Of a stretch of DNA of 64,000 bases, positions 8,068-39,094 are shown in pieces. How positions within the stretch are numbered: the stretch's first letter is position 1; each line of letters starts with the position of its first letter. A model generated the notes under the pieces. That model was not told where the DNA came from. It did not search any database and saw nothing but the letters and a program-made list of their open reading frames with translations. Made by a program: the position numbers and the translations under genes. Origin of the DNA: Podarcis bocagei (lineage: Eukaryota); the NCBI GenBank assembly GCA_964188305.1, contig OZ076895.1; one strand, 5' to 3'.

Positions 8068-8099
8068 GACAAAAAGGCAAAGTTGACCTGTGCAATATC

Positions 8100-10246: not shown

Positions 10247-10477
10247 CAGTGGTACCTCAGGTTACGAACTGTCCTGCTTCCGAACACTTCAGGTTATGAA
10301 CTCCACAAACCTGGAAGTAGGTGTTCCGGGTTGTGAACTTGGCCCCAGGATATGAACACAATCTGCTTCCGAGGCTGTGGGAGTCCTATGTAGGGAATGT
10401 GCACCTCGGGTTAAGAACGTTTCTGGTTAAGAATGGACTTCCAGGAGGAATTAAGCTGGTAACCTGAGGTACCACTC
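10247..10477. mobile_element. Tc1/mariner MITE
   Basis: TA|CAGTGGTACCTCAGGTTAC...GTAACCTGAGGTACCACTC|TA. Confidence 0.87.
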
Positions 10478-11273
10478 TATATTTTTAATCAGGTCACTTC
10501 TTTGCTTTCCTCATACCGTCATGGTTTTAGAATTAATGGCAATATTAGGCACACAATAAAGCATCTACCACATTGAACTATGCACCACACTCTTTATATT
10601 ATTTAGGAAGGGTATAACAGACAAATCAACGTTTTATCACACTGTGATAGATAGGGATTTTCAATTAGACATTTTCCAGGTCACGGGAAATATTTGTTTA
10701 AGCAAAGCTAGAAAAATGGAAGGAAAGCGGTTTGTTTGAAAGCTCACATATTACAAAAGTCGACATAATTTAAAGTGTATATACGTTTCAGAACAAGTCT
10801 ACATTCTTGCAGATAATAAAGAAGCTCGTACATTTCAGTGTGTGTTGGCAAACTGAAACAGGATAATATTTAAAATCATAGGGCGATATCCAACTAAGTC
10901 ATACACAGACTTAGGCACAATCTTATCCTTCACATATCTTATATAGTTTCTGCATACCTATGACTGATGATGGCAGAATAGATATAGAACATGTGTTAGA
11001 ACAGAATATGATAGTAGAACAGACTAAAAAAAAAATGCCTCAAAGTAAGAATCTTCAAATTTTTAATTTTATTTATTTAATTTTTCCCATCCCATCTATT
11101 TCTCCAAAGAGACTCAAGGTGGCTAACAAACCAGAATAAAAACAGCAAAACAAACATACCCCTTCCCCAAATACCAACTATGTATTCATAATAATACATT
11201 AATATCCATCGACCTTTGCTTATTTATAAAGGCAGTGACTCGGAACAAATAATTAACACTTCATGGCTTAAGT

Positions 11274-11499
11274 CAGGGGTGTCAAACTCAAATTCATCGG
11301 GGGCCGCGCCGCCGCTAGATGGCAGACGTTCTCTGGCTTGCAGGCTGCCGCGCATGCGCTGAAGAGGCGGCTTTCTTGTGTAAAAAAAAAAAAGTGAGAA
11401 TAAAAGGTGAAGGCTGGCGGCTGGCGGTGACTACACGGGCCACATGACGAGGTCTGGCGGGCCGGATTCGGCCCGCGGGCCTTGTGTTTGACACCCGTG
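11274..11499. mobile_element. hAT (Charlie-like) MITE
   Basis: CAGGGGTGTCAAAC...GTTTGACACCCGTG; 8-bp TSD GCTTAAGT; CpG-rich, so probably young. Confidence 0.9.
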
Positions 11500-11700
11500 G
11501 CTTAAGTGTTGCTGTTGTTTTTAAAAAAAATATTAGTCAGATTAATGAGAAATAGCAGTGCTTGAAATATGTGTGACCATGTTTAGCTTTATGGAGGAAG
11601 CTAAAGAGTTGATATCATCCTTGAGATATTGCTGTTCTCCACTAAAAAGCTGAAACGTTATATATGTTACTAAACTGCCTCCAAGACAAACATGTCTTAC

Positions 11701-11741
11701 CACTTTACAAGATGGGATAGTAGCACTTTCACAGTCACATT
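11701..11741 (-). CDS. OTOGL: OTOGL exon w39: ECDCESATIPSCKV
   Basis: cag/gtaaga, 41 nt. Confidence 0.9.
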
Positions 11742-11831
11742 CTGAGGAGAGAAGGACAGAGAGAGAAGGATCAGTCAGTGGTCCTACGTTGCTTATTCAA
11801 ATAATTATTGATAAAAATAAAACGCAGATAC

Positions 11832-11936
11832 CACAATTCCAGTCTGGACAGCACTGTCCAGTTATTCTCTTCTTCACCAGCTTCATTTCAGCAGAACAGT
11901 TCAGAAGAGGTAAGTGACAGTGATTCTCATCACAGA
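11832..11936 (-). CDS. OTOGL: OTOGL exon w38: VCDENHCHLPLLNC...CCPDWNC
   Basis: cag/gtatct, 105 nt. Confidence 0.91.
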
Positions 11937-12120
11937 CTGCAGGAAGAGAAGTGACGTAATTAAAAAGAAAAAGAAAAAAAGATTAGCATTAGTAAAACAT
12001 CAACAAATAAAGAGTTGCCAGGTCCCACACTGATACCACTGCCTGGTAACTGCAGTAGTAATTGAATGGTAATAGAAGCAGTCATATTAACCCAAGATAT
12101 ATTAACAAAGCAGACCTTAC

Positions 12121-12222
12121 CACAGTGGTAACGAGGGCAACAATAATGTGTGGAGCTAAGATCTACAGTGAGAATTTCCCCTTCATTGCATAACGGAATA
12201 GGTTCAATGCAGGATTCACAAA
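12121..12222 (-). CDS. OTOGL: OTOGL exon w37: VCESCIEPIPLCNEG...CCPRYHC
   Basis: cag/gtaagg, 102 nt. Confidence 0.93.
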
Positions 12223-13339
12223 CTGCAGGAGAAAATAAATCAAACATCCAGTTAAAACATATATATAGGTTAAAACTTATACAGCTGTGGTATTGTAGAG
12301 ATCTAATGTTAACTTGATACTGAGGCGAACCATAGCATTGGGTCACTCTTCATTTTGTTAGATTTCACCAAATCTATATTTAATTCCTAGATGCCGTCAA
12401 TGTACAGCTGAGAGAAATCAGATGAATTTTGCAGGTACCTCAAATCTACACTGACATACAAATGTATAAAACAACTTTTATAAATTTATTTTATTTAGAT
12501 TTGTGTTCCTCTTTTTCCTGAAGTTTCTTTTTCAGCTGAAACACTTTGGAATACATAACTATCTCAAAAATGGCATAGCCTTGAAAAGTCTCAGCTGAAG
12601 CCTAGATGCCTTCAGCTAAGTTCTCATCTCCCGCTATCTGAAGTACTATATTAGAGCAAATTCAGTTACTCCATATATAAATAAAATTACTCTGAGAATC
12701 AAATCCAAATAATTCTATGCAGTTATGCAGTTGTACAAAGTTGCTCCAAATTAGCTTCTTTTTAGAGCTAATTCATACAATGCTTTTTTAAAATTTGAGG
12801 ACAATAGTACTGTGAATGGTGTGTGCACATTTAAATAGGCTTCCCTAAATTAAACTTAGGATCCAATCACTCTCTAATAATGCATTTTTTGTGCCTTGAG
12901 GAGAAAATCAGCCATTAAAATTGACTGCACTTACATCTTACTTTTAAAAACAGGCAACTTATATAACTAAATTGAAAAACCAAACTCTATATTTGCAGGA
13001 AAGAACACCTAAAATAATAAAGGAACTGCCAAAACCATTTAAGTAAGTAACAGTTGCTGTGTTTGGGGCTCTTCAGCTTAAGAAAAAGGCGAATAAGGGA
13101 GGACATGATACAGACACACAAATTCTGCATTGTAACACTGTGGAGAAGTTGATAGGGTGACATCTTCCTCCCTTTCTCATAATATCCTGAATCTTCTGAT
13201 GACACAAAATGGTGGGAAGACAATGCTGGATTAGATAAGCCATTGACCTGATCTAGCAGGGCTCTTACGTTTTCAGTTGTAGATATTCTGGAATCCCCTG
13301 CTTACTCATGGATTTACCAGCATGGGAAAGCTTCCTTAC

Positions 13340-13447
13340 CACACAAATAAGAAAAACAGCAAGGATCCTCCTGTTTTGCCTCAACAAGAAATTGGTCTTC
13401 TCTGCATTCTGGACGGGAAGCATTGGGGCATGCTGATGGATCACATT
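13340..13447 (-). CDS. OTOGL: OTOGL exon w36: ECDPSACPNASRPECREDQF...CCFSYLC
   Basis: cag/gtaagg, 108 nt. Confidence 0.92.
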
Positions 13448-13660
13448 CTGAATTAAAAAACAACACAAAACAGTTTCTCTAGTAAAAGCTTGTTATTTTT
13501 AAATCCTCAGAAGAGCTACACATACATACTGTAGATGACCAATCTCTTGAGATAATTTTTCAGTCTGACCACATGTATGCCAACTTGTGTTCCAAGATGA
13601 AAGAAAAGCAGGATATACATACAATAAAATAAAAATAAATGAACATTAATTATCACTTAC

Positions 13661-13765
13661 CACATCGGTACTGAGGACAGCATGACAAAGGATCGTATAC
13701 CACTACCAACTTCTCAACACTTCTGCAAGTTGGAGTAAGAGGATCACATAGAGTCATGTTGCATT
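13661..13765 (-). CDS. OTOGL: OTOGL exon w35: ECNMTLCDPLTPTC...CCPQYRC
   Basis: cag/gtaagt, 105 nt, phase 1-1. Confidence 0.92.
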
Positions 13766-14157
13766 CTGAATATAAAAATAAAAAGACTGGCCCATTCAGT
13801 ATAGTGCTATCAAACGTTAACATGTCTCATGAAGATGACATCTATTCATAACTTCAAGGCTATTTATTAAATCTACTATTTACCAGAAGATGCAAATACT
13901 GAAGCAACTTTTCACTTCCTACAAGGAAGTATGTTCCAAATAAAAAAAAATGATCCTACAATTAGTCATGCTTAATATTATAATACCTTGGTTTATTATT
14001 TACTAGGATATGGGTCAATTGTTTTAAATACAGAAGAGTTTTTTCTCAAAGGCAGGATAGAAAAAAATAATAATGTCTTATTTGCACAAAATCAAAGGTG
14101 AACAAAGTATGTCAATGTCCAAATCTGTTTTTCTTCATTTGTTGAGGAAGACTTAAG

Positions 14158-14732
14158 TGTCAGCAGCCAGAGATGAGTGTAGGTCAGCAATTAAAAAACA
14201 CGGTGTTAGTGAAGTTAACTCTTTCTTCAAAGAAGCTAAAACAGGGCAGGCCTAGTGATCCCAGTAGGTCTTGCCCTGAAGAGGCAGCTGCAAGGACTGA
14301 AGGTTCCACTGTTCTCCAAGACTCCTCCAGTGTGTTTCCGAAGCTGTCGCAGAGTGTGTCTGCACACAACCAATCTCTGCTCTGCTCTTTTCATTTCTCT
14401 CTGTGTTCTGGGAGACCAGGAAGAAGGGGAGCTGGTCACAGCAGCAGGAGGAGACCCCCTGGATTCTTCAGCAGACTCTCTCATCTCTACCTCTTGCCTA
14501 CCATTTTTTCCAGCCTCCACTTCAGCATCGGATTCTGCACTGCTCTCTGCCCCAGCCTCTCCCTGCTCACTAAACCCTGTTGCCTCTTCAGCTTCCAACA
14601 CCTCCCCCTCCCAGTCTTCTCCCTCTAACTGCTCGTCGTTGTCCTGTCACCAGTCCTCTGGCTCTGAGCCCTCTTCCCCTGGGGGTTCCTCAGTTAGTGC
14701 CTCCCACCACCCCTCTGCATGCAGCCATGATA
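14158..14732 (-). mobile_element. Probable degenerate solo LTR
   Basis: Minus strand ends ...CTGACA; purine-rich body resembles 25568-26059; no clean TSD. Confidence 0.55.
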
Positions 14733-15237
14733 GTGCAGCTATATGATCATTCATAATGAAATGGAAACAGAGAAGTCAGAGTTTAAAGTGGAGAATCATG
14801 AAGATGCTAAGAAGAGTGCTATAATTTTTTTGCACTTCTGTACACATCTGAGCAAGCCTTTTGGATAGCCTAATTATGCTCCTTAATTGTGGAGTAGCAT
14901 GTAAACCACAGTCCCATCTCCCACATTCCTATGACGATGTGTAACCAGATAGGTGTTTGATTCTAGAGACCCACCACCACCAGTTCCTCAACTGAATGGT
15001 GATGGGACATTTCCATCACAACTCAGAGGGGAGCCTTTTTATAGCTTATAGCAGGGATCAGAACCATATTTGATATATGTTCGTTTGTTTTTCTCTCCAA
15101 AACTTCAGCACTGGCTTCAGAACTATCCATGAGGAATTATTAATTTTCTCTAACAGTAAGCAATTTGACAAATTTTATTAGCACGCAGATCAATTCCTTT
15201 CAGCATAATAATACAGCACCTCATAAACATTACCTAC

Positions 15238-15450
15238 CACAGACTTTCTTTGGACAGCAAGCCCCTTCCTCGATCACATTAATAATCACTTCACCCTCTC
15301 GCCGGCATATCGGAGGCACCTCTTTATTGCATTCAGGCTCTACGCCAATAATGCTCCCATTCTCCACACACATATACATGCAGCACCCTTTCTTGGAGCC
15401 ATTCCAAACTTCTCCAGCTGAACGGGGATGCCCTGCATTGTCAGTACATG
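15238..15450 (-). CDS. OTOGL: OTOGL exon w34 (VWC-like): ACTDNAGHPRSAGEVWNG...CCPKKVC
   Basis: tag/gtaggt, 213 nt. Confidence 0.93.
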
Positions 15451-16185
15451 CTATAAATGAAAAGAGAGCATAACATCCTTCAGAAAGACAGGAAATATGA
15501 ACCATATCCAATTAGAAATCAGGAAATTAGTACAAATAAAACTTCTAATTAAGGGGCTTACATTTCTTCCTGGAACATATTTGTAGACTATCATTTAAAA
15601 AACTGTGCAACTTAAAAGAATTTTTAGTTACTCAATATCTATGACCAAAATAGAATTATCTGCTTTCCTGACTAGCAACTTATGCACATCAGAGTTCATG
15701 GCTCTGCACAAATTACCCATTTACTTCACCATGGTCCAGTTAAAGGAGCTGATGTGATTTTATGAACCATTGTGAAAATGAAGACTTGCCTTACTGGGTC
15801 AATTTGAGTTCCATCTAACCCACCATACTATTTCCAGCAGCTGACAGCTAAATGACTCTTCAAGCTTACAAAACAGGCCATGAAAATTTTAAAACAAACA
15901 CAGACTGCAATCCTATGGATTGTTACTCAGAAATTCACTTCTGAATCAACATGCATAGGATAAACAGTGGCAGTGATTTTGCAGCCTGTAGATGGAGCAC
16001 AGTTTTTCAAGCTGCACTCATTTGGGAATAGAAAAAGCTGGAGGTATTCTGGGCTGTCTATTAATTTCAAGCTCTTTGAATAAATAAACGACAAAGATAA
16101 AAACCATGTCTCTGCCCCACCAGAAACCAAGCACGCTTGGGCCTAGTGTGGGTAAATGTGCTTACATAGCTATAGGTTTACTCAC

Positions 16186-16371
16186 CACATTTTTCTTCTG
16201 GAATGCAGAGATCAGAGTCTGTTCTGTGAAGAATGGTTCCATTTTTACAAACACAGTCTTCTCTTAAGTAGGAACAGGGTGATTCTTCATAGAACCATTT
16301 ATTTAGGCATGTTTTAGCAGCACACGGTTGCACACAAGGCTGGTACTCTTTCCCATCAGGACAACGGAGAG
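16186..16371 (-). CDS. OTOGL: OTOGL exon w33 (TIL): SLRCPDGKEYQPC...IPEEKC
   Basis: tag/gtgagt, 186 nt. Confidence 0.93.
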
Positions 16372-16476
16372 CTACATGTCAGACACACAGAGGGAAATCA
16401 ACACTGCTGACATTTTCTTCTCCTAATTGAAGCAGCTGAGGTAGCAGGGAGAGAGAAGCAGAAGTACTATACTTAC

Positions 16477-16618
16477 AACAGTAATCTGGTGTTCTCCACT
16501 TAATGCAGATATTATGTTTGTTGCACAGCGCTACATATGCAGAAAGAGCATCACATTCATAATTCCAAAAATATGTATTGTTGATCCACATTTTTTCGCA
16601 AAAGTCTTGGGGTGAAAC
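16477..16618 (-). CDS. OTOGL: OTOGL exon w32 (C8): VSPQDFCEKMWINNTYF...RTPDYC
   Basis: tag/gtaagt, 142 nt. Confidence 0.94.
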
Positions 16619-17162
16619 CTACATTAAAATACATTATATAGTGACTGATCAATTAACACTCATTAATTGATGAATAAATTTCTTTTATCTTCACTAGGAA
16701 CAAAAAACAAGAGAGAGAGAGAGAATGAATAATGTCATTTTAAATAGTAAAGACAAAAAAAGAACTCTCAAATTCACAGTTGTTCAATACCTTCATGGAG
16801 ATGCACCAGAATATCAGAGATGTGTGGCAATTATTTGAGTTCTCAGATTCCTTGATGTTCAACCTGATACCTGCAGCAACTGTGAGACACTTATTCAGCC
16901 TGCAATCTCCATCTTGGAACTGTCCACTCACAATACATTAGATGAGCACTTCTCTTAGTAAGCACTGGTAAGCAATTATCTTACAAAGAAAGTTAATCCT
17001 CTTCCTCCCCTCACGATTTCTAGAACAGTGCCCTCAGGTGATGAAACCATTAAAACCATTTCATAGGTATTCAAATTTAATTTATATGCTTTATATTAGC
17101 GTGCCCTGAATTGCTTGATATGATCGTCTAGAGACAGAGCTCACTCCTTTGTATATACTTAC

Positions 17163-17377
17163 TTTTTTGTGGCATGGGGCAAAAGCCCATCTATGTAAGA
17201 GTTCCATGCAGTATGTACAGTTATCTTCTGTACAGTTTCTTACAGGTCTCCTTGTTGTTAGATCAACGGATTTCTCAATTTCCCAACTCTTAATAAAAGC
17301 CTCAATTTCATCCACATTTGTAATTATGGTTCTATTTTGCATTTTCAGGTCATCCCCTGGATCGCCATTGCAGACAC
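17163..17377 (-). CDS. OTOGL: OTOGL exon w31: GVCNGDPGDDLKMQNR...APCHKK
   Basis: aag/gtaagt, 215 nt. Confidence 0.93.
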
Positions 17378-18019
17378 CTTAACAAATGAGCATAGAACAT
17401 TTAATATGTTAGACAGTAAATTAAAAGGTTTGATTTATTCTGCAATAGGGAAAGAGCAATAGGGAAAGAGCTCAGAGCAGGCAGAAAAGCTAATCTCGAT
17501 GTGTGGAATGATACAATCTAGTATAAATTTCCTTCACCATTAATGTAAATAGGCCCTGTTATGATCCAGTCATCTTCCGGTAGAGAGATACAAATAAGTC
17601 CTTTACTAACTACAGGCGACGACTATGTTGTGCAGGGGTTCTGTTCCCAACCCCAATGGACCCCGCTCCACCCTCATACCACCCCCGTTCTTCCCTCTTC
17701 CAGGTCCAAAAGGAGCCATATGTTGGCGATTGTGCATCATTTGGACCTGCCTAAAATGGTCGCCACCTGTACTCTTCTTCTATGTTAACACAATCATTGG
17801 AAGTTGCTGCTGAACAAGACACAAGCTTTACCAGCAATACCAGTATCTGGGGTGGTGAGGTGAGTGAGAGAGACAGAGAGGCAGACATCAGATCATGGAT
17901 AAGACTTTTGGTTTTGGTTGGCAGGACACTGGATAGCAAGCATACTCAGTTAATTTTTTTTAAGAAATAAAACAGCTGTGGATCAAAATGAAGATATTGA
18001 TCAGAAACCATGTTCTCAC

Positions 18020-18209
18020 CACAAAGGCCTTCAGTCTTGGTAGATGTATTAGAATGAAAGCCATACTGGATATCTATAATGCCTGTGACATGAGCCCACT
18101 TAATGTTGATGCCAGCTGGCGTGTTGACTACATACATAGCACCAGTATCTTGAATACATAAACCATGTTTTGAGAAAGGCAAAGGCTGAATCATAGAATC
18201 CACGACCAC
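18020..18209 (-). CDS. OTOGL: OTOGL exon w30: VVVDSMIQPLPFS...TEGLC
   Basis: tag/gtgaga, 190 nt. Confidence 0.93.
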
Positions 18210-18610
18210 CTAAAAATAAAGAAATTGAAAAAATTGCAGGATAACTGTATCTAGGTGAAACACCTTCATCTGCCTCAGCCTCATTGCTGCTTCTTTGTAA
18301 ATAAATAGACATGGCCAATCAAAGCACATTTTTAATCACTTTCTACCATTTAGTTTGCCCCCTTGAGGCCGGGCTAGGAAAATAAATTATTTGTCAAGGA
18401 GATCTGGTCTCAAATCTCCCACATGATATCTAATTTGACCCTCCAAAGGCCAACCAATGGGGCAGTCTTAGGAGATATGACTTGCTTGTCATAATCCCAA
18501 ATATCTAAATGCATGTTTGCAATTCTGGAAAAGGTTTTCCTATTTCTTTTACTTATCCACAATAGATTTCTAATAGTATTAGTCTTCACTGACTATTCCT
18601 CTTAACTCAC

Positions 18611-18703
18611 CTTTCTTTCTAAACGATTGATAAGTACAATATGTGAAGATGTTGTTACGTTAAGTTTCTTAAAACAAAGACCCGAAGCACTTCCAGGTGG
18701 AAC
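18611..18703 (-). CDS. OTOGL: OTOGL exon w29: VPPGSASGLCFKKLNVTT...RLERK
   Basis: aag/gtgagt, 93 nt. Confidence 0.91.
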
Positions 18704-18803
18704 CTTGAAAGAAAACAAACACAGAGAACGATATGGCACCATCAGCACTAATTGTAGTGTTCGCTTACAGATATATTAAAATCATATTTAGAAAAATACT
18801 CAC

Positions 18804-18827
18804 TAGTCTTCTTATTGAATTGGCACT
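18804..18827 (-). CDS. OTOGL: OTOGL microexon w28: SANSIRRL
   Basis: tttttttcag/gtgagt, 24 nt, phase 0-0. Confidence 0.85.
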
Positions 18828-19142
18828 CTGAAAAAAAGGTATAAACATGGGTTAGAATCACAGTTACATAAAGCAGTACAATTACAGCATTACGTAAGAT
18901 CCATATTTCTAATACTACAGTTCTGCTAATTGGTCAATGAATAATCCATCCAGAATCCCTCACACAAGGATTGCACATTATCAGATTATAATACGTAATA
19001 GAAAGAATGATCTCATTCATTTCTTACTAGAGATAATATTGATTTGCAAATTTCCTTTTAAAAGCACTATAAACAATTTTTTGTTGGTGGTGGAGGGGGA
19101 GTAACCCTTTTAATACTGCATAGTAGTACACAAGGTTCCTAC

Positions 19143-19285
19143 CTGATTTGTAGGGCACCTTTCAATATGAGCAACAATAATTTCTGTGGGTAGCTTGACT
19201 AAGATATAGGATGCTACTTTATACAATGCCACGTTATTTCCATCAAATGTAATAATGCTCAGTTCAGACAGGATAGAACATTGAC
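19143..19285 (-). CDS. OTOGL: OTOGL exon w27 (VWD4 start): CQCSILSELSIITFDGNN...CPTNQ
   Basis: tag/gtagga, 143 nt. Confidence 0.92.
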
Positions 19286-19327
19286 CTAGGAAAAAAGTGA
19301 CATCTAATAACCAGCAATTCAGAGATT

Positions 19328-19328
19328 T

Positions 19329-19392
<64 letters not shown>

Positions 19393-19393
19393 C
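19328..19393. repeat. Compound (AAT)n(AAC)n microsatellite
   Basis: Direct reading. Confidence 0.95.
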
Positions 19394-19692
19394 GAAGGAC
19401 TTATTTTGCTAGGTTACTTCACATACTGAAATGCACAGAAAGTTCACTGAATAGAAAAATACTATTAAAAAAATGACAACTGTTCAGCAGTACAATCCTT
19501 ATTACTCTGAAGTTAAACTGTGATGGTTACATTCAAGGAAGCTTGGATAGGATTTCCTGACATCCTTACATCATTTCCTAGGACTGCTTCATATATTATT
19601 AAGTCAATAGGCACATTCCTATGCAGCAGTAGAGTATATTCTAAGAAGCATGTTACTTTTTCTTCACTGTATGTCAGGGATTTAGAACTTAC

Positions 19693-19870
19693 AAGGACAT
19701 TCCCATTCTGGACAGCAGCTGTCACTGTTTACTTGGACTGGCATCCCATGAAAACCACAGTCAGGCTTCTCCACAGTCTTATGGCAGTTCTTTGAGAGGT
19801 TGTACAGCATCCATCCCATATTAATGCACACGTACTGACTACATCTGTCTACTGGATCAAGATACCTTGG
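19693..19870 (-). CDS. OTOGL: OTOGL exon w26: PRYLDPVDRCSQYVC...CCPEWECP
   Basis: cag/gtaagt, 178 nt. Confidence 0.93.
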
Positions 19871-20129
19871 CTGTTTTATAATGGGGGGAGAATTGGGAGA
19901 CATTAGCACCAGTCTTGATTTTATTCCATGAACCAAGATGCCCCTTCACCATACAAAAAAGGAAAGATAAACTCTAGAGAGTATGTCTGCATATTATGAC
20001 GATAAAGATATTGTCTCTGAAGCAGCTTTGAAGAACAAAAAGAAATAATGTACAAATCAAAATAATAAATGGTCTAATAAAATTTTAGAATGTTAAGTAA
20101 ATTAAATAAGTAGGTAAAAATGTCCTCAC

Positions 20130-22705
20130 CGTGCATTCTGCGGATGTCGCAGATATTAATGTATGTATCATTGTGCCAAAGGAAGCATATTCTGCACCAT
20201 CTGTAGTCACCATCTCCATTTCAGCCTTTGAAGTGTGGGCCCCTAATTGCTCTGCAGTTAAGTGAGTTGAATCTGCTATTGTGACATTCTGCAAGCTGGT
20301 TGTTCTCATTTCCTCGGGTTCAGCCACACTATAGTAAGGCCTAATTGATTTTGGTGGTGGAGCTCTAGACCAATCGGATAATGTTACATCTATCAGATCG
20401 TCTGAGAGAGAGACTGGTTTCACCGAAGCCCTTCTGTTTTCACTGATAGCCAGAGTCATCTGAGTGGGAAGCAGCGAAGATTCCTCAGTGCTTGTGTACT
20501 TAGTGACTTTTTCTTGTATTTCTGAGGTCTGGTTACTTTCTGAGGCATAAGCGGTCACATTTCGAAGTTCTGTAGCATGTGTCACTCCCAGCTCTATCCA
20601 ACCTGAGGTAGTCCCTTCATCCATTTTAATGGGTATAGTTCTGAAGGCTTCTGTGGAAGGTTTGGGTGTAAACAAAGTAAAGTTTGGAGTATGTGTAAGT
20701 GTTTGGGAGGTAGTAGGAATTGGGAATGACGTAGTAGCAGTGTGGTGTTCAAAACCAATAGGATAGAGTTCAGTGACTAGAGCAGTTTTGCTAGGAACTA
20801 TCGTGCCTGTAGAGGAAGGTAGTAAACTTACTGGTGGGCTAAGGGTATACTTTTCAGTGACATTTGTTGGGGTTGAGGTCATATTCCCAAGAGCACCCAT
20901 GGTAAATGCTGGCTCTGAAGACTGAGTACTGATTGCACTGGGTAATGAAGATAACGTTCTACCATCCACTGAAGAGGAACTCCTTGTTCCTAAAAATAGC
21001 ATGGGCATATCAGAGGCCTCCAGAGGAGGCAAAGATGAAGCATTTATTGTGGAAATAGTTGGACTTAAAGTTGACAAAGCTGAAGGAGAAGCTGCAGGGT
21101 AAGAACCCGGGCTTGTTGAGGTAGGATGTTCACCAACTGGCATTTGTATGAGAGTGCGAGCTGGCATCACAGCAGAAGTTATGCCAGTTGTGGGAATCAC
21201 CGATGAGCTTTCAGAATAAGAGGCTGAGACAGAAGAAGTTTTTGGTAACACTGTAAGTAATGTGGACGAACTTGTGAAAGCAGATAGATGTCCTGGAATC
21301 ACTGCAGAAGTGGTGAAACTACTCACACTTCTAAGAGTAGAATCAGTTTTTAATCCTGTGTGTGGTCCAACTGAATGCATACTTGTTTTCGGAGTCATTT
21401 GTGTTGTGTCATATAAAATACTCGTAGGTAACAAAGGGGTTCTACTTGGCAAAGCTCTGGTGCCAGCAAACTCTAATGAACTTACAGAAACAGTTGGCAC
21501 TGGAGATGAACCAATGTGCAATGCATGCTTGCTTTCTGTTGAAACTGTTTTTGTTTCAAGGGACTGGGAGGTCTGAGGAACGTCTGGAAGCGAAGCAGTG
21601 GAATGTCCTATATGAAAGCTCTTTGAGATAATTGTAACTTCCCCAGTTGCTTTGGACATTTGAGACGTAACTGGAGGAGACATCAGCGTAGACATTGCCT
21701 GTGTCACTTGGGGACTCAATGAAGACCGCATGGTTGTAGGGCTTGGTGAAGCAGCTGAGGATGGTGTTGTAGTAGAAAAATGCTTTGTGGTTAAGGGAAC
21801 AGTGTGTTCAGAAGGTGTTATAAGTGCTTCTGGTGATGATGGAGATGTAGGCAGCAGCACTTCTGAGTCAGGTCGAGTTGTCATTGAGCCTGAAACTGGT
21901 ATGCTATAAGGAGGACTTGAAGAAAAGGCAGCTAATCTAGATGCCGATAAGGGAATTTGAGTTGTTGTAAGCACAGGCAAATGAGTCAAACGAATAGTTG
22001 GCTCGGACATAGTAGACCTAGTTCTTGAAGTCACAGTAAGCATTTCTGTTAATGGTGAACCTGAAAACAGACTTGAACGAGATGTTCTTTCAGTTGATAA
22101 AGATGGCTGTGGTGTTCCTGCTACCAAAACCTCAGACTTGATTGTGGAAGGACCTCCACTCACTAAGATGCTTGTAGGTGTTTTAGCAGAGGCAAATTCT
22201 TGTCCAGCAGGTAATGCAGCAGATCTCAATGGTATAGGTGATGTGGATATTAAAGGAAATGCAGACAGTGATGGTTCAGCTGTTGTTGCAGTGAGCGATG
22301 ATATAAAAGATATAGGATTTGTGGTGTAGGGTGTCACCTTTGCTGTAACTGCTGTGGCTTCTTTAGTGGTTGGGAGAGCTGTTGGGGATATAGGTGCAAG
22401 TAGCACAGAGGGTGTTGTAGTGATGTAGCTACCTTCAGAAGAGTGCTCTGGAACTGATAACAGTGTTGCAGAATGAAGATCTGTAACTATTTTCTCTGTA
22501 GTTTGTCCTCCAAATGTCCCCACTCTCTCAGTTGCCATTTGGGTAGTTAGATTAATATATGTTATCTTAACCGCTTCAGTGACAAGCACAGGGGGCATAT
22601 GAGGAAATGTTTGTGCCGTGTCCACTGTATGGGGGCTTAAAACGGTGGGCCTTGTTCTCAGTGGCTTTGCTGTTGTTGAAGCTTCTGTGGCTTTCACAGG
22701 TATGC
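20130..22705 (-). CDS. OTOGL: OTOGL giant exon w25: ~858-aa mucin-like Pro/Thr/Ser-rich domain (CIPVKATEAST...ATSAECT)
   Basis: Lies inside ORF 20085-22769. ttttacag acceptor, gtgagg donor; phase 1-0 joins both neighbouring exons exactly. Confidence 0.88.
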
Positions 22706-22979
22706 CTGTAAAAAGAGTATGCTTCAGTATTATTCCATAGTAATGAAAGGGAAGGGAAGCAGGAAGCAATCTAGATTCAGGCTCTCCAGCTTCTTAGTAA
22801 GGTGGAAGATAGAAAGTCAGACTCTTCCTAGGCCTGAACGAGCAGCAATAGTAGATTTTACTGCTTTGCTTAATAAAATTATTGTACAAGAAGCAATGAG
22901 GTCTATTTAAAGAGTTGCATCCCACAGTTTTGTTCGAGAACAAAGCATTTCATAATTTTTTTTAGAAAATATGCAGCCA

Positions 22980-22981
<2 letters not shown>

Positions 22982-23018
<37 letters not shown>
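22982..23018. repeat. (AC)n microsatellite
   Basis: Direct reading. Confidence 0.95.
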
Positions 23019-23021
<3 letters not shown>

Positions 23022-23722
23022 AGCTTTTCTTTTACTTATTCACATATAAGAGGTGATCTTTCACTTCTACAATTAATAGTCCAAAGAAATCCCAGTCAGT
23101 TTAGTGGGTCCTGCTCCTGAGGCAACGCTGCATAGGATTGCTTCTCCAGAAATATATTAATAAAAACAAGTGGGGCCTGCAATAAAATGTAACCAGGATG
23201 GTGCCGTGCTCATGTTCATTATTCCAGCCAAACATCCATGCCTATTCCATCCCCCACCTTCCAAAAGACAGTCAGCAGTCCATGTCTACTCAGCACACTT
23301 AGTCTGCATTGAGCTGTTTGAGGATTTTTGCCTCCATAGGGTTCCCCCATCACCACAAAGATGTTCGTGGGGCTTATGCAAAATTTTCCCAAGTTTCCCC
23401 TAGTGGACTGAACCCTCCCTCCTGTTCATGGACAAGCCATTTTGGCTACATGAGAAGCAACACTCAGAAAACTGAGTATGCTATTGGTATATTTGCTTAT
23501 TTTAAACTTTCAGATATATATCAGTAAAAATGTATTTTTCATAGGCTGCACTAAGTGACTTATACCTTTAAATTTACTGTAGTATAATATAACACCTTTA
23601 AAGTTATTGATGCAAAGACTAACTTTATATCAAAATAGCTTGTATGTTGGATTATATTGGTGATAAATATTACATACTACAGTATTCTAACAATCTACTC
23701 AAAAGATATAGGAGACACTTAC

Positions 23723-23802
23723 AGTCTTCTGGATAAACACATTTAAGTGTGACTTCATCAAGAATCATATCTTTGGGACAGTATGGTAAGCATCCTTCAA
23801 CC
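23723..23802 (-). CDS. OTOGL: OTOGL exon w24: [26 protein letters not shown]
   Basis: tag/gtaagt, 80 nt. Confidence 0.93.
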
Positions 23803-24266
23803 CTAAAAGGTTCAAGGAAAACAACAACAACACAATAATTCTTTTGTAGTCATTTCAAAAAGGCAAGAAGCTTAAAGTTTGAACGGGTGCTCCATATAAT
23901 ACATATTGCATGAATCAAAATGAAAATGGTTGAAAACTAGTCTCTGTTTCAATACTTGAATTCTATACTTCAGCTCTGAACAAGGCATCCTTTGCTGATG
24001 ACAATGGAAGATATTGTCTGAAAATTTCTAGGAACTTCAAAAAACACACTGGTGGAAAACATAAGCAAGTTTCTAATGTAAGCAGAACTCAAGTCCTCTT
24101 CAAATGTTACTTAATTCCCAAGGATGCTACTCAGAAAGATATATTTTTCTGAATACGGAACTTAATGAGCCGTAATTGGTCAAACAGGCAAATGTGGCAA
24201 CACGGTAGAAAATAATATCCCAAGATTAGTATGTTAATTATTACATGAAATATTAATTATACTCAC

Positions 24267-24384
24267 GGTGGAAGAAATTTACATGCTACTCCTTCAGGGT
24301 CACTGCATGTTTTAACACAAGGACTTGTACAAGGTTCATATCTCCATTCACACATCCTCCTATAAGGTACTGCTGTATGGAGTT
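24267..24384 (-). CDS. OTOGL: OTOGL exon w23: ELHTAVPYRRMCEWRYEPC...CKFLP
   Basis: cag/gtgagt, 118 nt. Confidence 0.93.
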
Positions 24385-25567
24385 CTGAGAAACAACAAAA
24401 GCATCAGATTGGGCACATGGGTGTAAACATTAACTATATCTGAACACCCACAAGGAAACTGAAGGTGGAGTCCACTCTATGGAGGACAAGGGAGTACATA
24501 TTCCCAGTGACACCACCCTCTTTGTACGTGTTGGTTTTCTTCTTCTTCTGGAGACAGATTGTGTCTACACTGAGTGATACAACAGAAACAGATGACTGTT
24601 ATAATATTAATATCTGCCTGTTTCTATTGCATATCATTTGAGACAGTTTTTTCTTCTCCTTCACCATTTGAACACTGAAGAAACATGTGTCACAGGAAAG
24701 TTGGGTCAAGGGAGTAAGACAGAGGAAGGGAGGCAAAGGCTGGGCATTCAACAACAAATTGCCCTGTGAGACGGATCCCAATGAATTGTTAAATTTTTAA
24801 TACAGTGATGCTAGTTATGTATTTTTGTTACTTGTAAGTCACCTTGGAAGGATTTGTGACTTGAAAGGTGGGATACAAATAAGAGGAAAAATTAGGATCA
24901 CTGCTGAGTATTTCCATACAATAGGTGCAGTAGAATATCTATCTAATCTATAAATTGTCTTTCCAGCTTAATAACCCTTAAGATAATATATGTGAAAATC
25001 ATGACAACACTAATTAAAAGTAGAACATAAAACAACAGCACGAAAGCAGAGGTAGTAGCACAAAAGAGGCAGCATAAAATCAATGCAGACACAAAGACCA
25101 GCAAATGCCTGGGGGAAAATCTGAAATCTTGACACCAGTTGTGTATAAATGAAGGCTGTCTGGAGATCTCTTTGCATGGAACAAGTTCATCCTAATTCTT
25201 AAGCTGGTAACAGCAAAATGAGGATACTTTAGGGTTTCTTTCAGGGTGACCTGATTCATGGACCCCTGTGTAGAGTTATGGTTCAGTTTTCACACATGTC
25301 TGAATTTTGCAATACAATTGCAATTCTCAGCTCAATACAATTCTCAGCTCAGCAAAATCTACCAAAAGGTGTTTAAAAAATAAAGTGGTTGTCGTGCTTT
25401 CTTAACAAGCTAAAATCACAGATATGGAAGCACAATGGAATGGGCTTGCAAATGAAAACATAAAAACTGAGGCTGGCCGCAGATTGACTGATTTGTCCAT
25501 TCTGAAGTTACAATGTAACTGCTGCTATTATAAATCTTGAAAATGATATATCCGCAGCATTCCACAC

Positions 25568-26059
25568 TGTCAGGGACTGGACAGAGGAAGAATGGTGGAG
25601 ACTGCCTCCCCAGTCTGAACTTTCCAGAGAACAGGAAGACAGTATAGATTTACAACAGTAGTTTGATGAGGTCACAGCTCAGAGGTAGATGAGGGGCAAA
25701 GTTGGGAAATAATGGGAGAAGAGGAGGGGGAGGCAGAGCCCGAGCAGCTGGCTGACACGCTATCACTAGAAAGCATTCCAGATCCCCATTCTCCCAGAAC
25801 CCGGCAAGCATTGAAAGTAGGAGAGCAAAGGGCTCAGAGACAAATGGCCCTAAGCAGCCACCATAAGGAGGGTGGTGCTGTTGACGATTGAGGAGAGAAG
25901 AGAGGTGGAGATTACTCAGAGCAACATCATTACTCCAAAAGGCAGCATTCCTAAGCCTCTCTCTGTGAATATTCAATAAAATACATTGGTAAGAGCCTTC
26001 CTTGTCTATCTATTCCTGGCAGCCTACCATGGGGGGATCGGATTCCCTGACGCCTGACA
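25568..26059 (+). mobile_element. Solo LTR of an LTR retrotransposon (492 bp)
   Basis: TGTCAGG...CCTGACA termini, 5-bp TSD CACAC, AATAAA near 25975. Confidence 0.85.
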
Positions 26060-26094
26060 CACACACATTGCTCCCAGGAACATGTACCACTCAC

Positions 26095-26373
26095 CCTCTA
26101 TGTTGAAACTGCTTGAACGTTTGAATTCTTCAGAATCATCAAACTTTGATACTTTCACAGAAGATGCTCTGAGTATGATAAAGAAACCTTTCTTGCTATG
26201 TAGTTCGAATGCACTGTAGCCTGGGATCCAAAGGCCTTGATGATGGAAAAAAGTTGCTCTTCTACGAAACAAGGAACTTGCCTCCCACTGTTCTAAGGAT
26301 ATGCTTTCATCATCATGGACATATAGAAAGTAGTTTGGCCTTTCAGCAGACTCAAGAGAAACCAGAGATGGAG
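26095..26373 (-). CDS. OTOGL: OTOGL exon w22 (AbfB-like beta-trefoil): SPSLVSLESAERPNYFL...SSFNIE
   Basis: cag/gtgagt, 279 nt; VSLES..PNYFL and ATF...GL motifs. Confidence 0.93.
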
Positions 26374-26858
26374 CTGCCACAAATTAAATCCACAGCAATA
26401 TATTAATAAGATTTCACCACCAAAATCAAATGGTTCATATGGTGATACTTCCGTTAAAAATCTGTTCAGTGGCAAACTAGTCCTGGCAAGGTTACATTAA
26501 AATTCTGCTAACAGTATTTTAAAATGGCTTCTTTTCATAGTGATTATTCCTGTTCTTGGCCTACATTAACTATGGCTGAACATCAAGTGAAATCTTATAC
26601 ATGTCTACTTAAAAGATAGGCTTATTGAACTCCATGGTATTCACTGGTGCCTATTCCCAGGAAAATGTGCATAGGTTTGTAGCCTGATACTTTGAATCTG
26701 ATTAATATAAAAAAAGAGTCCGTTGTTAACTCTGGGTGTTTATCCTACAGAAGTAATATTTTCTGAAATGTATGGCTGCATCTGAATGTTTCAGGGCAAC
26801 TCAGTCTAGAAATTCAAGGATGAAAGTAAAATGATAATTGTAGGCATTTATTTTAGAC

Positions 26859-27206
26859 GCAGGTGGCACTCTGGGTTAAACTACAGAGCTTAGGACTTGC
26901 CGATCAGAAGGTTGGCGGTTCGAATCCCTGCAACAGGGTGAGCTCCCGTTGCTCGGTCCCTACTCCTGCCAACCTAGCAGTTTGAAAGCACGTCAAAGTG
27001 CAAGTAGATAAATAGGTACCGCTCCAGTGGGAAGGTAAACAGTGTTTCCGTGCGCTACTCTGGTTCGCCAGAAGCAGCTTAGTCATGCTGGGCACATGAC
27101 CCAGAAGCTGTACGCCGGCTCCCTCGGCCAATAAAGCGAGATGAGCGCCACAACCCCAGAGTCGGTCACGACTAGACCTAATGGTCAGGGGTCCCTTTAC
27201 CATTAC
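26859..27206 (+). mobile_element. Sauria SINE, near full-length
   Basis: tRNA-like head with GGTTCGAATCC B-box, CCTTTACC tail, TSD TATTTTAGAC. Confidence 0.93.
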
Positions 27207-27523
27207 TATTTTAGACTACTTTTTTTAAAAAAAGAACTAAGCTGAGATATTTCCGGTTAACTTTAAGATGCTATCAAGCATTTCTCCTAAATCAAGGGAG
27301 AAAGGACTTGTACACTGGTAAAGTAAAAATAAATAAAACAAAAATATTAATGATTAAAAATACTAAAGCCTTTGTTTCTCTTACAACTCTTGTCTTCATG
27401 TCTATCACAAATAGATTTTGTAAAAGATAATGAAAAAGTATTCTCTGATACATAAAGATTAACATTTTTTCAACTCTGAAAACTTGAGATTTAATTACAT
27501 GAAATACTGAAGATAGGACTCAC

Positions 27524-27691
27524 ATAGTATTTTATTTTTGAAAAGTCCTGGAGTTAGCATAAAATTAAAATACACATTCCCACTGACACTGCTTCTTGGC
27601 AAAGGAAAGATATTTTTGCTGGTGACATTGACTCCTATAACAGTGTCATTCTGACCATAGCTGGCTAAAATAAATGGTCCTTCCCCAAGTC
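27524..27691 (-). CDS. OTOGL: OTOGL exon w21: GLGEGPFILASYGQ...MLTPGLFKNKIL
   Basis: cag/gtgagt, 168 nt. Confidence 0.92.
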
Positions 27692-27930
27692 CTGGAGGAA
27701 GAAAAATGACAGTCAGATGTTAAATGATAGCAAGAGAAACAAGCAACTCAAAACACTGATGGATTTCTTTTTATTGATGGTTGTGTAAACCTTCTTGTGA
27801 CCATGTATGGTGAAAACTAGTCTATAAATACTTGGAACTACCATCACTACTACAGCAGTGTTTTGGGAGAATCTATATATCCCATATATTACTATTATTT
27901 ATTTTTAAAGCTCACAGAAATGCTACGTAC

Positions 27931-27957
27931 CTTGGTTGTAATAATCACAGTCATAAG
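27931..27957 (-). CDS. OTOGL: OTOGL microexon w20: PYDCDYYNQ
   Basis: tttcag/gtacgt, 27 nt, phase 1-1; matches the conserved DCEYYN motif. Confidence 0.88.
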
Positions 27958-28831
27958 CTGAAAGAAGGAACAGGCATACCATTTAATGACAAGCACAACA
28001 ACTCAGAGAATAATTAGAGAATTTGTGATTGTCAGTAACAACAAGACAAGGTCACATAGCCAAGCATTAAATTCTGATTCACAAAACTCACTCTTCTGTT
28101 CTTTTACTTATAACCTGCATTTTCCTTGGATTCTATTATTAGTAAAGAAATTAGTGTCACTCTTTTGAAGACCTAACCTTAACTGCAGTTTCTGAGATAT
28201 ATTTTTTCTGCACTGCAGAACAACAAGAAAACCCTTAAAAATGTGTTTCTACATTCACTGATTATTGGTTTTTTTGCAGCAGCAGTCAACATTGCTAATA
28301 AATTGCTAGCTTAAGAAGAGTAGAATACAAAAGTAACATAATGTATACACAGGCAGATAATATATACAAATAGTTACTCAGGTAGGATTTCATCTGGTAT
28401 TATAATTGAAATCAATGGTCTACTCCAAGTATGCCCAACACTGAATATTGCTTATAGTTGTAAAAAGGTACAACTTTTAACATAAGGTCCATCTGTAAAA
28501 ATTCAGACCAGAATTACTACTTCTTTTTAAGAATGGCAAACTGCCACATGGTACATCTTACTTGGACGTGCTTGGAGTCTTGGAAGCTTAACTACTCTAC
28601 ATTCTCCTACTAATGGACCTTAGGCTTGTTTGGTGTAGAACAGCACAGGGGAGCATAGCTATTGTTTACCCTTGAATTACTTCTGTGCAACCATATCTGG
28701 TATCAACCCACTAGTTACCAGCATTTGCACAGGAAACATTGCTGTACTAGAAATCAGTTAAAGAAAGTATGGAATAATCTGCTTTCCAGAGATTATGCTT
28801 GATGGCATAATGAATAGCAAAACATACGTAC

Positions 28832-28988
28832 GACAGAGAGATGGAGATCGCCAGTGAATTACTGCACCCTGCTGGCAGCATTTGTGAGCATAAGCTGCAA
28901 TACTTGTGCACAGACATTCACAGTCTCCGCCAAGATTACAATTGCAAGTATCTGTATGGCAGTTTTTGACGAATGATGTCACATCAAT
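28832..28988 (-). CDS. OTOGL: OTOGL exon w19 (C8): [27 protein letters not shown]...SPSLC
   Basis: cag/gtacgt, 157 nt; this donor is the one compatible with the next exon's phase. Confidence 0.92.
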
Positions 28989-31186
28989 CTGAAAAATATG
29001 GAGAAAGTCAGATTCAGAGTAGCAGAGGAGGGAAATGAGGGGATCTGTTGAAATGAAATTGTTGTGAGAGGTTACTGAAAACAATTATGGAAAGAGGCCC
29101 AGGTAAATTGTACACCACAGAGTGGTGGTCATTCTAAAAGGAGTCAACTTTCACAAACCTAAGGATAAAACAAGTAAAGAAGTCATTTAATGGGCATATT
29201 GATGAAAGTGTAGAAACAAGCAGCAAACATTGATTTAAGGACAGCAGGAGCACAAAACCAGCCAGAGAGAGTAAGATGTTAGATGACAAAGATGCAAAGG
29301 ACTCCTCGATGAGAACAAGAAAACTGATTGACCCTTTGCTTCAGCCTTCACAGCACAATATGTTAAACAAATAGTCACAGGTGAACTATTATTTTCAAGG
29401 AGGAGATCTGTCTCACAAAGAAGCGACAAAGAGTACAGCTTTAAACTGACAAATTCAGAATAATCATTTATCCAGGGTTGGAAAGCAGGAGTTCTTTTAA
29501 AAACTCAAATACAAAATTCCTGCTTGTTTAATGAAAACGTGCACCTTATTATTAAAATTGGCGTCCTTACTAGAAGATGGGTAGTCAGGAAACTTAACTC
29601 CAGTTTTTGTTTTTGTTTTAAGGACCTGGGAAATTATAGACCTGTCAACCTAACATTTGTCCTCAAAAATGGGTAGAAAACATGAAAATTAGAAGTCTGA
29701 AAAACTATGAGAAAACTAGCTTAGCTGACGATGCACTTTTGAGAAACAAAGCATGCATGTGGAAGTTTGACATTTGCTTTGAGATTAAATGGAAACCAGA
29801 AGTGGATAAAATAAATCTGACTACCAAAAGTGGTTCAAACACTGTTGTAGCAGCAGCAGCAGCAGCAGCAGTGCAATTAAGAACAGCAATAATAATGGCA
29901 TAAACTCATACTGAATTAAAGTAACTTTTGGGGGCTAGATTGTCTGTAAAGAGAAATGTTATAACCAAGCAAAGAATGACCATGCTCTTCAGTTATAAAG
30001 CAAATGCTGCCATCTACTGCATTGATTGGCTATGCAGCTGAAACTAACATGCCTGTCAAATCCAGCCAGCAGCTCATCCCATCTGCTTATTGTCATCTTA
30101 GCATGATATCACCATCACCTTTAAGTTGTGCTTTTCCAATTTCCTGGGTCATCTTTTCAGTTAGTCCAGAACACTATTTATTTATTTTGTACATTTGTAT
30201 ATCCCCCCTCCTTTAAAGGCAGCCTACAATAATGCTCCAGAAACATAATGGTAATCCTGATGTGAACTTGGGAAGTAAACAGTGGGAAAATGGAACTGAT
30301 GGTTAGATGGTTTCTGGTAACTTCCCCAGGTATGCTTCCTGGATAATACAGGCCTCCTTGTTCCATGTCCCATGGTGCAGTTTGGTATCTCCCTGTGTCA
30401 GTTTCTTCATTCAATCCTAGACACAGAAACCAGAACCTACCAACAGATTACAAGAGCCAATAGCAGCCTGCTAATAATACATTGTATGTACAATTCAGTA
30501 GTGATAAGACAAGGAGTGTGAGATGGCAGCTTGCTGGCCAGAAAGGAAAAGGACAGGAACATTTCAAACCCAAACAACAAATATCTTGGAACTGTACATC
30601 TTTTCAATAAAATGTTTTGGAGCTACCCTGCTTTTGATATGCTGCTCTTGAAAGGAGAAGGCCACAAGTTTCAAATCTTCAGGTGGGGACTACTAAGCCC
30701 AAACTGGAAGGATATGGAGGAACAGCCTATGGCTTGTTCCCCTGTAGCATCTGCTAAGTAGATTCCTAGAACAGAGCCCGGGGACATTATGTGGTGTGGT
30801 GGCTCCCTTGCCCTTCAAATGAGCAGCTGCTCATCTTGTGGACCAGGACTGAGCCAACAAACTTTGCTGCCTGAGACAGTCTCCCCATACAGAAGCAAAT
30901 CAGATTGGAAGTAGAATCTTACTTCAACCTCTGGCAGTGTCTTCTGCTTAACCTGAGGGCAGCAACTGCAGGATGCATGGTACACACAGCTCTGTAGCAC
31001 GATTGCTTGACACTGATCATCACCCTCCGCACCTCGCCATCTGGTGCCTGAAGCAGGTGCCTAACAGCAGGGATGACTAAGCCTGTTATGAGCCAGGTGT
31101 TAGTGCCACAGCAACTCTTACATTTGGCAAGCAGAGATCCAGAGCAAAGATGTGCTTTCTAGATAGCTTAGGAAATATATACTTAC

Positions 31187-31303
31187 CACATTGCGACAGG
31201 GGGCAAAAATATCACTGTACAAAACTGAACATTCCTTTTTGGCATAAGGGAACTTGCTCTGATGTACTTCACATGGTTTTATGGTCTCATTTGGGCTAGC
31301 ACA
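31187..31303 (-). CDS. OTOGL: OTOGL exon w18: CASPNETIKPCEVHQSKFPYAKKEC...CRNV
   Basis: cag/gtaagt, 117 nt. Confidence 0.93.
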
Positions 31304-33097
31304 CTGAAATCACAAGCACTTGTTAATAACTTTGGGTACATTACACATTTGTTGCACTGCAAACCCCTTTAGAAACGCCCACCAATCTGCCCCCAGTCTC
31401 TGAAATAAGACCCTGGCATTCCATGTTTTTGTTCTCTTTTCTCCTAAACCTCACACTTTCCTTACAGCTGAAAATATTAAGCTAGAATGGATCCTTCTTT
31501 ATTGTTTGGTTTTTTTAAAAAACCTCATGTTCCCCCCCCATCCTTTTTGGCAAACAACATGTTTTCTTTATCGCACATAATCACTGTTTCCACAGCAGCC
31601 ATCTGTAAATCATAAACAGAGCATTGTTTATCCAATGTACCATTTAGTTTAAACTTTAGTGCTCTGGAAATAAGGACAAAGAGTCCATAACTTTAAATGA
31701 ATAAGTTTGAATTCTGCAGGTGACAAAAGGATTTAATTGCAACTGCCAGCTTAAAATTTTGGAATATGATTTTTTTGGGTTAATATGGATGGTTTTAACA
31801 ACAACTGTAATTAATTTAAAAAGTTTATATGAAGAAGCAACAGTAGAAATAAATTAATTCAGGGACAGTAGAGGGACACAGACCACAAAAACCATCAACA
31901 TTAGTGGAAAACAACAACTCTCCTAAGCTTTTTAAAGAAAGGCGGGGAGCAGAGTGGGAGAGATGTTATCTGTAACATATACAAAGAGCCACACGCAAAA
32001 CAATTTTGTACACAAATATTGGGTGCCATTCACTCAGAGTAGGCCCACTGAAATTAACAGAACTACTTTAGACATGTTGATCAATTTCAATGGGTCTAAT
32101 CTGAGTAAAACTACCACCTATTATGTATATACCATATAAACACCATGATGTATTGCAGATGTCTGTGCTTTATTTCCCTGGGTATACAGAAGGCAACTCC
32201 TTCCCTGGAGATTGCTGCTTCTAGTCATGTATTAAAACAGACGTGTGCATATTTGTCAGATGTTGCCGAAGTACATGCATTATACACAGGGTGTTTTTTT
32301 TTATCTATTAGTGGCATTCATGTAGGGAATAATCTTATATGAAGCAGCCCTCAGATGGAGCAGTAAAGATGGTGAGAAAAAGCAGAGGATGGAAAATTAG
32401 TCAGAGCATTTGTAATCTGATGTGGCAGCAAGGTCATTGCACTTTTGAATTGCAACAGCAAAGGCGGGAAGTCATGGGGAAGAAATGCCTGCATGCTCTC
32501 AAGCAGCTGTGCTTCAGCAAAATAGGAGATGTTACATTGAGCTACGTGACTACAGTCTGGTGGGGGGGGGGGAACAAAGCAGGAAATAAATTTTAAACAT
32601 TGTCATACAAGCTGTTTGGCCTATAGCACAGTAAATGTAAGCACTTTTGTGTATCATATACACAAACAGAAACTCTTAACGGGTTTCGCTGTGATGCTCT
32701 TGTCATCCTCTTTGTCTTGTGCCAATGAAACAAAAGCCTTTCTAGGTACTAGAGTAGGGGTGGTTGGCCTGGGGCCCTCCTGATGTGGCTGGAATATACA
32801 AATTCCTTCCTCGGTGGAAGCTGCAGTCCCATCAGCTTCCATGGGGCCAAGATGCATTGCATCTCCTTTCGTATTTGCTCGCTCCACATGGCAACCATGT
32901 GGAACAGTGGAAATACGGTGAATGTGCAGAAGTATGAGAAGTGGTTGGCGATAGGACAGGGAACTACCACACCCAGAACCTGTCAAATTGATGGCCTACT
33001 AGTTGCTGGTTTAATGGTAATGCTGCTCCTACATTTCTTACACCCTCACCATCAGTTGCCTGTTTATTTTCAAAATGAATGGATATATCATGCTTAC

Positions 33098-38316: not shown

Positions 38317-38321
<5 letters not shown>

Positions 38322-38396: not shown

Positions 38397-38400
<4 letters not shown>

Positions 38401-39055: not shown

Positions 39056-39094
<39 letters not shown>

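Follow-up and report, generated by a model that had tools for sequence, protein, structure and literature searches.

Is a 2576-nucleotide (nt) open interval in the OTOGL gene of the lizard Podarcis bocagei a genuine exon and, if so, is it peculiar to lizards? This question is raised by a stretch of 64,000 nt (assembly GCA_964188305.1, contig OZ076895.1), referred to here as the window. OTOGL encodes a secreted glycoprotein of the inner ear that is related to von Willebrand factor and to the gel-forming mucins and occurs in acellular gels and in hair-bundle links; the tectorial membrane and the attachment links of the outer hair cells both contain it. In humans, it has 59 exons and is a deafness gene (DFNB84). 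The interval is very probably a single exon encoding the central linker of OTOGL, a disordered, likely O-glycosylated spacer that is common in non-mammalian tetrapods, cut down in the therians sampled and partly spliced out in birds.

Boundaries and composition of the exon

The exon (20130..22705, minus strand) consists of 2 nt that finish a cysteine codon and 858 codons for the linker between the D3 and D4 assemblies; it is called here the PTS exon, for proline, threonine and serine. It begins GCATACC after an acceptor at 22705 (...tttttacAG|GCATACCTGTG) and ends at a donor at 20130 (...GAATGCACG|GTgagg). The reading frame starting at 22703 is free of stops over all 858 codons; the frame read from 22705 contains many. 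The first two bases, GC, form a Cys codon with the terminal T of the upstream exon (23723..23802, minus strand). This upstream exon encodes the end of the D3 TIL domain (..LKCVYPED + T), is flanked by AG at 23804-23803 and GT at 23722-23721 (GTaagt), and matches OTOGL orthologues directly before their linker. The first exon after the PTS exon (19692..19870, minus strand; AG|CCAAGG ... CCTT|GTaagt) starts the D4 assembly (PRYLDPVDRCSQYVC...CPEWECP) and opens in frame with PRYLDP at 19870. Base shuffling of the PTS exon never gave a stop-free sequence (0/2000 shuffles). As the exon length is 3x858+2, skipping would cause a frameshift. An earlier note on this DNA had described a stop-free 2576-nt exon with canonical splice sites, joined in frame between the D3-TIL and D4 exons and of a length that is not a multiple of three, and the window sequence bears this out in full. 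A (TG)n-type run, reading VCVCVC, is also present in a flanking intron, within 22906-23035 (minus strand), some 200-330 nt upstream of the acceptor of the PTS exon.

Threonine makes up 17.0% of the residues encoded, serine 16.7% and proline 9.9% (289 Ser/Thr and 85 Pro among 858 residues), giving an S+T content of 33.7% and an S+T+P content of 43.6%, with values of 28-60% across 50-residue windows of the protein. An S+T+P content of 43.6% is lower than that of classical mucin domains. The sole Cys is residue 857, and there are eight N-X-S/T sequons, at residues 51, 554, 607, 614, 674, 715, 724 and 806. Tandem Repeats Finder (score >=30) detected no tandem repeats in the exon, and no Pfam family matched it, with neither CysD nor other Cys-rich subdomains found. 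These counts and the repeat search agree with the composition given in the earlier note: a dominance of Ser, Thr and Pro, Cys at the ends only, no repeats and eight sequons. In an AlphaFold2 prediction based on a 22-sequence alignment, the predicted local distance difference test score was below 50 at 858/858 residues and there was no secondary structure; as modeled, the segment fits an intrinsically disordered, extended chain.

Identity of the gene

One alternative is that the gene is not OTOGL but its paralogue OTOG, the long Thr/Ser/Pro-rich (TSP) region of which is already well known, and that it was misnamed in the earlier note. Mouse otogelin (OTOG) has a TSP region of 585 residues (1451-2036) that likewise lies between its D3 and D4 assemblies (PMC4659790), and the name automatically assigned by UniProt to the Phrynosoma homologue is ‘Otogelin’. 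OTOG is, however, a separate gene with a TSP region retained in mammals, and the published identity between OTOG and OTOGL is only about 33% (33% in PMC12274630). Comparisons used individual exons of the window or database proteins, rather than a joined spliced model; the exons of the window are 92% identical to OTOGL of Podarcis raffonei and, over about 1800 residues, share 67.8% identity with the dog protein and 65.4% with the opossum protein (tblastn), and the named RefSeq homologues are all ‘otogelin-like’. Judged from these comparisons with OTOGL proteins and from the published OTOG-OTOGL identity, the gene is OTOGL, as the earlier note had it; the OTOG assignment has practically no chance of being correct.

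OTOGL fills the whole window on the minus strand and extends past its high-coordinate end. Its coding exons (770..63030) are represented by 39 colinear tblastn matches to residues 405-3117 of the 3175-residue P. raffonei protein. The AbfB exon (26096..26380, minus strand; Pfam PF05270, E 1.6e-10, 41.7 bits vs a cutoff of 22.8) encodes a domain characteristic of otogelins (PMC4948705), which occupies residues 1272-1377 in the Podarcis orthologue. The D3 TIL exon (24266..24385, minus strand) is 100% identical to residues 1379-1418 of P. raffonei OTOGL. VWD, C8 and TIL domains were matched by Pfam on individual exons of the window, and the orthologue P0143 has four stretches of each. The exon at 770-871 is 79% identical to Podarcis residues 3084-3117, and Pfam analysis of this exon alone gave no cystine-knot match.

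The PTS exon has direct counterparts in the RefSeq OTOGL proteins of other lacertids: Podarcis muralis (XP_028603020.2, 3181 aa; 94.8% identity over the exon), P. raffonei (XP_053262546.1, 3175 aa; 93.6%, residues 1446-2302) and Zootoca vivipara (XP_060135411.1, 3164 aa; 90%). These are computational models of the same gene and exon, 90-95% identical to the window, with linkers of 852-859 residues. With orthologues of 3164-3181 aa, the suggestion in the earlier note of an OTOGL of more than 3,000 aa finds support. A profile built from the PTS exon and two orthologous open reading frames (ORFs) was also searched against 1.84 billion representative proteins. It matched a Phrynosoma protein, a caecilian ‘otogelin-like protein’ (3217 aa, matched at residues 1947-2340), an 844-aa ORF from a cuckoo and a galliform ORF of 273 aa that clusters with a quail ‘otogelin-like protein’. 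The N-terminus of the caecilian protein, used as a query, retrieved 265 named OTOGL proteins.

Coding constraint

Orthologues of the PTS exon were provided by two genomic contigs from the Logan collection (L001 and L002), which represent two further lizard species. Both have AG/GT boundaries as in the window (acceptor TTTACAG|G, donor CACG|GTAGGG), with open frames of 855 (L001) and 849 (L002) codons that are 52-54% identical to the window exon at the protein level, and their indels are in-frame only. The ratio of non-synonymous to synonymous substitution rates (dN/dS) for the three sequences is 0.55-0.56, at a dS of 0.21-0.62. At a similar dS, the D4 exon (19692..19870) has 93% amino-acid identity to L001 and a dN/dS of 0.046. 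On this comparative evidence, the PTS exon is coding; its protein sequence evolves about ten times faster than that of its Cys-rich D4 neighbor, yet its frame is clearly kept open.

Some parts of the segment evolve more slowly. The exon can be aligned across tetrapods, and 22 sequences all share G843, T844, H847 and C857. Of the eight sequons in the window, four (N51, N607, N715 and N806) are kept in 8/8 other lizard sequences. Conserved islands are found at residues 351-366 (KATGEVTI.SKSFHIG), 762-792 (SVKPVS...DVTLSDWSR.PPPKSIRPYY) and 840-858 (ASFGTM.HTL..S..EC), the last of which is retained from caecilians to birds. These islands may be short linear motifs.

Length of the linker across vertebrates

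Linker length was measured in every protein fetched, as the number of residues between the peptides of the flanking exons. The D3-D4 linker is 837-884 residues long in 12 lizard species (RefSeq/GenBank), 876-931 in caecilians, 893-906 in salamanders, 711-758 in frogs (717 in Xenopus tropicalis, XP_017948131), 808-1010 in turtles and 786 in the gharial. In birds, the long isoforms have linkers of 838-963 residues, and short isoforms, which are very common, have linkers of 315-445 residues. Going by these RefSeq models, the long domain, at 711-1010 residues, is the common state of non-mammalian tetrapods. The earlier note had presented the domain as a peculiarity of lizard OTOGL; this does not hold, as a long linker is the RefSeq norm in amphibians, turtles, a crocodilian, birds and at least 12 lizard species. 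Two snake models (one from Ensembl, one from RefSeq and based on a fragmented assembly) have linkers of 28-40 residues, which were not taken as a loss.

The linker is 38-48 residues long in the dog, porcupine, guinea pig and opossum, and 13-277 residues long and very Thr-rich in teleosts, both sets of lengths being drawn from a search whose scope, proteins of <=2450 aa, would leave out longer models. For eutherians, this bias is offset by a cluster at 90% identity with 669 members (dog as representative), the 15 listed members of which are 2230-2361 aa long, and by the published length of human OTOGL, 2353 aa (PMC12274630). The short linker that the earlier note gave for human OTOGL has its match in the therians sampled. 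In the opossum, the OTOGL locus spans 252 kb. Outside the linker, mammalian OTOGL is 65-68% identical to the window and shares its VWD, C8, TIL and AbfB architecture and, probably, the cystine knot, but about 800 disordered Ser/Thr/Pro-rich residues are missing, the linker having 38-48 residues vs 858. The earlier note had also seen a resemblance between the two ends of the lizard exon and those of the human linker. For mammals, this stands at the start (CIPxxPTE, common to mammalian linker and lizard exon); at the C-terminal end, only the final ..EC-x is shared, and likeness is not statistically detectable. When mammalian linkers were set against a profile built from 22 tetrapod PTS domains, their first 11-26 residues alone could be aligned, and C-terminal likeness was accordingly rejected.

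The teleost linker differs from the tetrapod domain in being shorter, much more Thr-rich and repeat-like rather than non-repetitive. Among the teleost RefSeq OTOGL models of <=2450 aa, four (P0239, P0260, P0225 and P0245) have repeat-like linkers of 157-277 residues with an S+T+P content of 49-67%.

Internal splicing in birds

In the harpy eagle, swan goose, great tit and little owl, one RefSeq isoform of a pair lacks linker residues from about 90 to about 650-657, removed exactly and in frame. In a chicken-like Logan contig (L004:1428-4281), alignment to the emu PTS domain is spread over three different frames. CCAA|GTATAG is joined to TCTCTAG|GA in the chicken protein, and the intervening 1.69 kb of L004 contains 25-35 stops in each frame. 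In a cuckoo contig (L003:5941-8601, GCA_032191515.2), the frame is open, with the same donor and acceptor motifs as in the chicken-like contig. From these sequences, it looks as though an internal intron arose inside the PTS exon of birds and became obligatory in Galliformes; the bird case looks like an exitron turned obligate intron, with the middle of the exon intronised in the way that the earlier note had suggested for mammals. The decayed 1.69-kb middle in L004 provides a natural neutral-decay control for the open lizard exon.

The lizard exon might itself behave as an exitron, an internal in-frame part being mostly spliced out and the full 858-residue form being a minor isoform. Birds remove the homologous middle, in some cases in one of two isoforms of a single species and in the chicken-like contig as a decayed obligate intron, and at the homologous position (residue 573) the window has an acceptor-like TTTTTAG|G that L001 and L002 share. 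At the homologous place for the donor, however, 3/3 lizard sequences (window, L001 and L002) lack the CCAA|GTA of birds, and a bird-type exitron in the lizard was rejected because the donor is not conserved. In addition, the full linker of 837-884 residues is present in 12/12 lizard RefSeq models, and across deep lizard divergences the whole length is open, its indels are in frame and its dN/dS is 0.55, which implies that the full exon is translated often enough for selection to act on it. Predominant removal of the middle is, on balance, unlikely in lizards, and inclusion of the full-length exon in lizard OTOGL is the reading retained here.

Gene models that omit the exon

The OTOGL models of sauropsids in Ensembl and B10K have linkers of only 6-60 residues. 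In Ensembl, UniProt and B10K models of about 2150-2370 aa from lizards, snakes, turtles, birds and the platypus (P0188, P0220, P0209, P0216 and many bird entries), the PTS exon is dropped or intron is read. The linker of the platypus Ensembl models starts CKCLLFF..., an intron read-through like that which the window gives after 23723, and these models are faulty. For P. muralis, the earlier RefSeq model (XP_028603020.1) has only 2420 aa, and the Ensembl models, at 2216-2266 aa, lack the PTS exon. The short sauropsid models are evidently homology projections that drop the PTS exon, since it is present in RefSeq models from those species or from sister species.

Nature and proposed role of the domain

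The gel-forming mucins (MUC2, MUC5AC/B and Xenopus MucXS) resemble lizard OTOGL in having a disordered Ser/Thr/Pro segment that is largely encoded by a giant exon and placed between D3 and D4/cystine knot (PMC5789918; PMC4948705). The lizard exon differs from them in lacking tandem repeats, CysD and Cys-rich subdomains, in its lower S+T content of 34% and in being alignable across tetrapods, which mucin PTS domains usually are not. MucXS, formerly called ‘Otogl’, is another gene, and its mucin domain is encoded by several exons. Two chicken proteins with PTS and VWD or SEA domains have been described as ‘related to otogelin’ (Lang et al., 2006; PMC1552070), and otogelins have been said to be without an extensive PTS domain (Dubaissi et al., 2018; PMC5789918). 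The latter statement does not fit the OTOGL gene models surveyed here.

In the proposed mechanism, the non-repetitive, cysteine-free segment of about 858 residues would sit between the N-terminal D1-D2-D'D3 and the C-terminal D4 and cystine-knot regions. By analogy with mucin PTS domains and the otogelin TSP region, it would carry dense O-glycans and a few conserved N-glycans. Glycosylation would stiffen and hydrate this spacer, lengthening the monomer and making it more gel-forming, and the spacer would separate the multimerising D assemblies at the N-terminus from the dimerising part at the C-terminus.

A different type of spacer can be envisaged, equally disordered but working via conserved short motifs and N-glycans, rather than mucin-type O-glycans, as a flexible tether or as a docking site for proteins like stereocilin or the tectorins. 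The invariant residues and conserved islands, unusual for mucin PTS domains, are consistent with such a role, as are the low S+T content, the lack of repeats, the four sequons common to all lizards and the published description of otogelins as devoid of an extensive, predominantly O-glycosylated PTS domain (PMC5789918). Conversely, a secreted protein segment with so many Ser/Thr and Pro residues and full predicted disorder is a classic substrate for GalNAc-transferases, and the D3-D4 interval is exactly where PTS domains are placed in mucins and the TSP region in otogelin (PMC4659790). A role through motifs and N-glycans is the less likely reading, but one to be taken seriously. Heavy O-glycosylation, suggested by composition and predicted disorder, is the most likely state of the segment.

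Several points weigh against the view of a long, O-glycosylated OTOGL linker common to non-mammalian tetrapods and reduced in therians. O-glycosylation is predicted from composition and disorder, and a segment of 34% S+T that lacks both repeats and CysD is an atypical mucin domain of low density. The lengths for mammals and fish come from a size-limited search, and bird isoforms of one species may or may not contain the middle of the linker, so that a shorter isoform may exist in lizards as well. Inclusion of the exon is deduced from DNA and gene models, rather than from lacertid transcripts: among the sequencing runs listed for the exon, none was on record as RNA, 0 reads fell on 19500-24500 in three bulk RNA-seq runs from a related organism, and one small run yielded only two short contigs inside the PTS exon, at about 96% identity, which is no test of expression or junctions.

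Novelty and implications

The PTS exon and an architecture of more than 3,100 aa are already in RefSeq for close relatives of P. bocagei and for most non-mammalian tetrapod groups, and the feature is, in this sense, already known. No paper on the OTOGL PTS domain of non-mammals, its reduction in therians or its splicing in birds was found among open-access papers and preprints. In practical terms, the window yields a modest result, a genuine exon that RefSeq models of close relatives already include.

The survey reads the short mammalian form as derived, OTOGL having about 3000-3300 residues in amphibians, turtles, a crocodilian, birds and lizards. Functional work in mice and humans has dealt with a protein of about 2350 residues, described as being without a mucin domain. 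This bears on hypotheses about differences in ear gels between mammals and other tetrapods. It also matters for annotation, because Ensembl and homology-projected models of sauropsids lack the PTS exon, and for the choice of model organism, because the chicken uses the internally spliced form. A more far-reaching scenario, in which the OTOGL of the tetrapod ancestor had a glycosylated spacer of about 800 residues that was lost on the mammalian stem, possibly by a bird-like exitron route, with altered cochlear mechanics as a consequence, is a long shot. If it were true, the links from hair bundle to tectorial membrane, or the gel itself, would have taken on other dimensions or another stiffness as OTOGL became shorter, and this would have helped to shape cochlear mechanics of the mammalian type.

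Other features of the window

An intronic trinucleotide run within 19113-19400 (minus strand), just upstream of the D4 VWD exon, reads as poly-Cys and then poly-Tyr. A run of 148 N, corresponding to an assembly gap or to masked sequence, lies at 33605-33752 inside an OTOGL intron.

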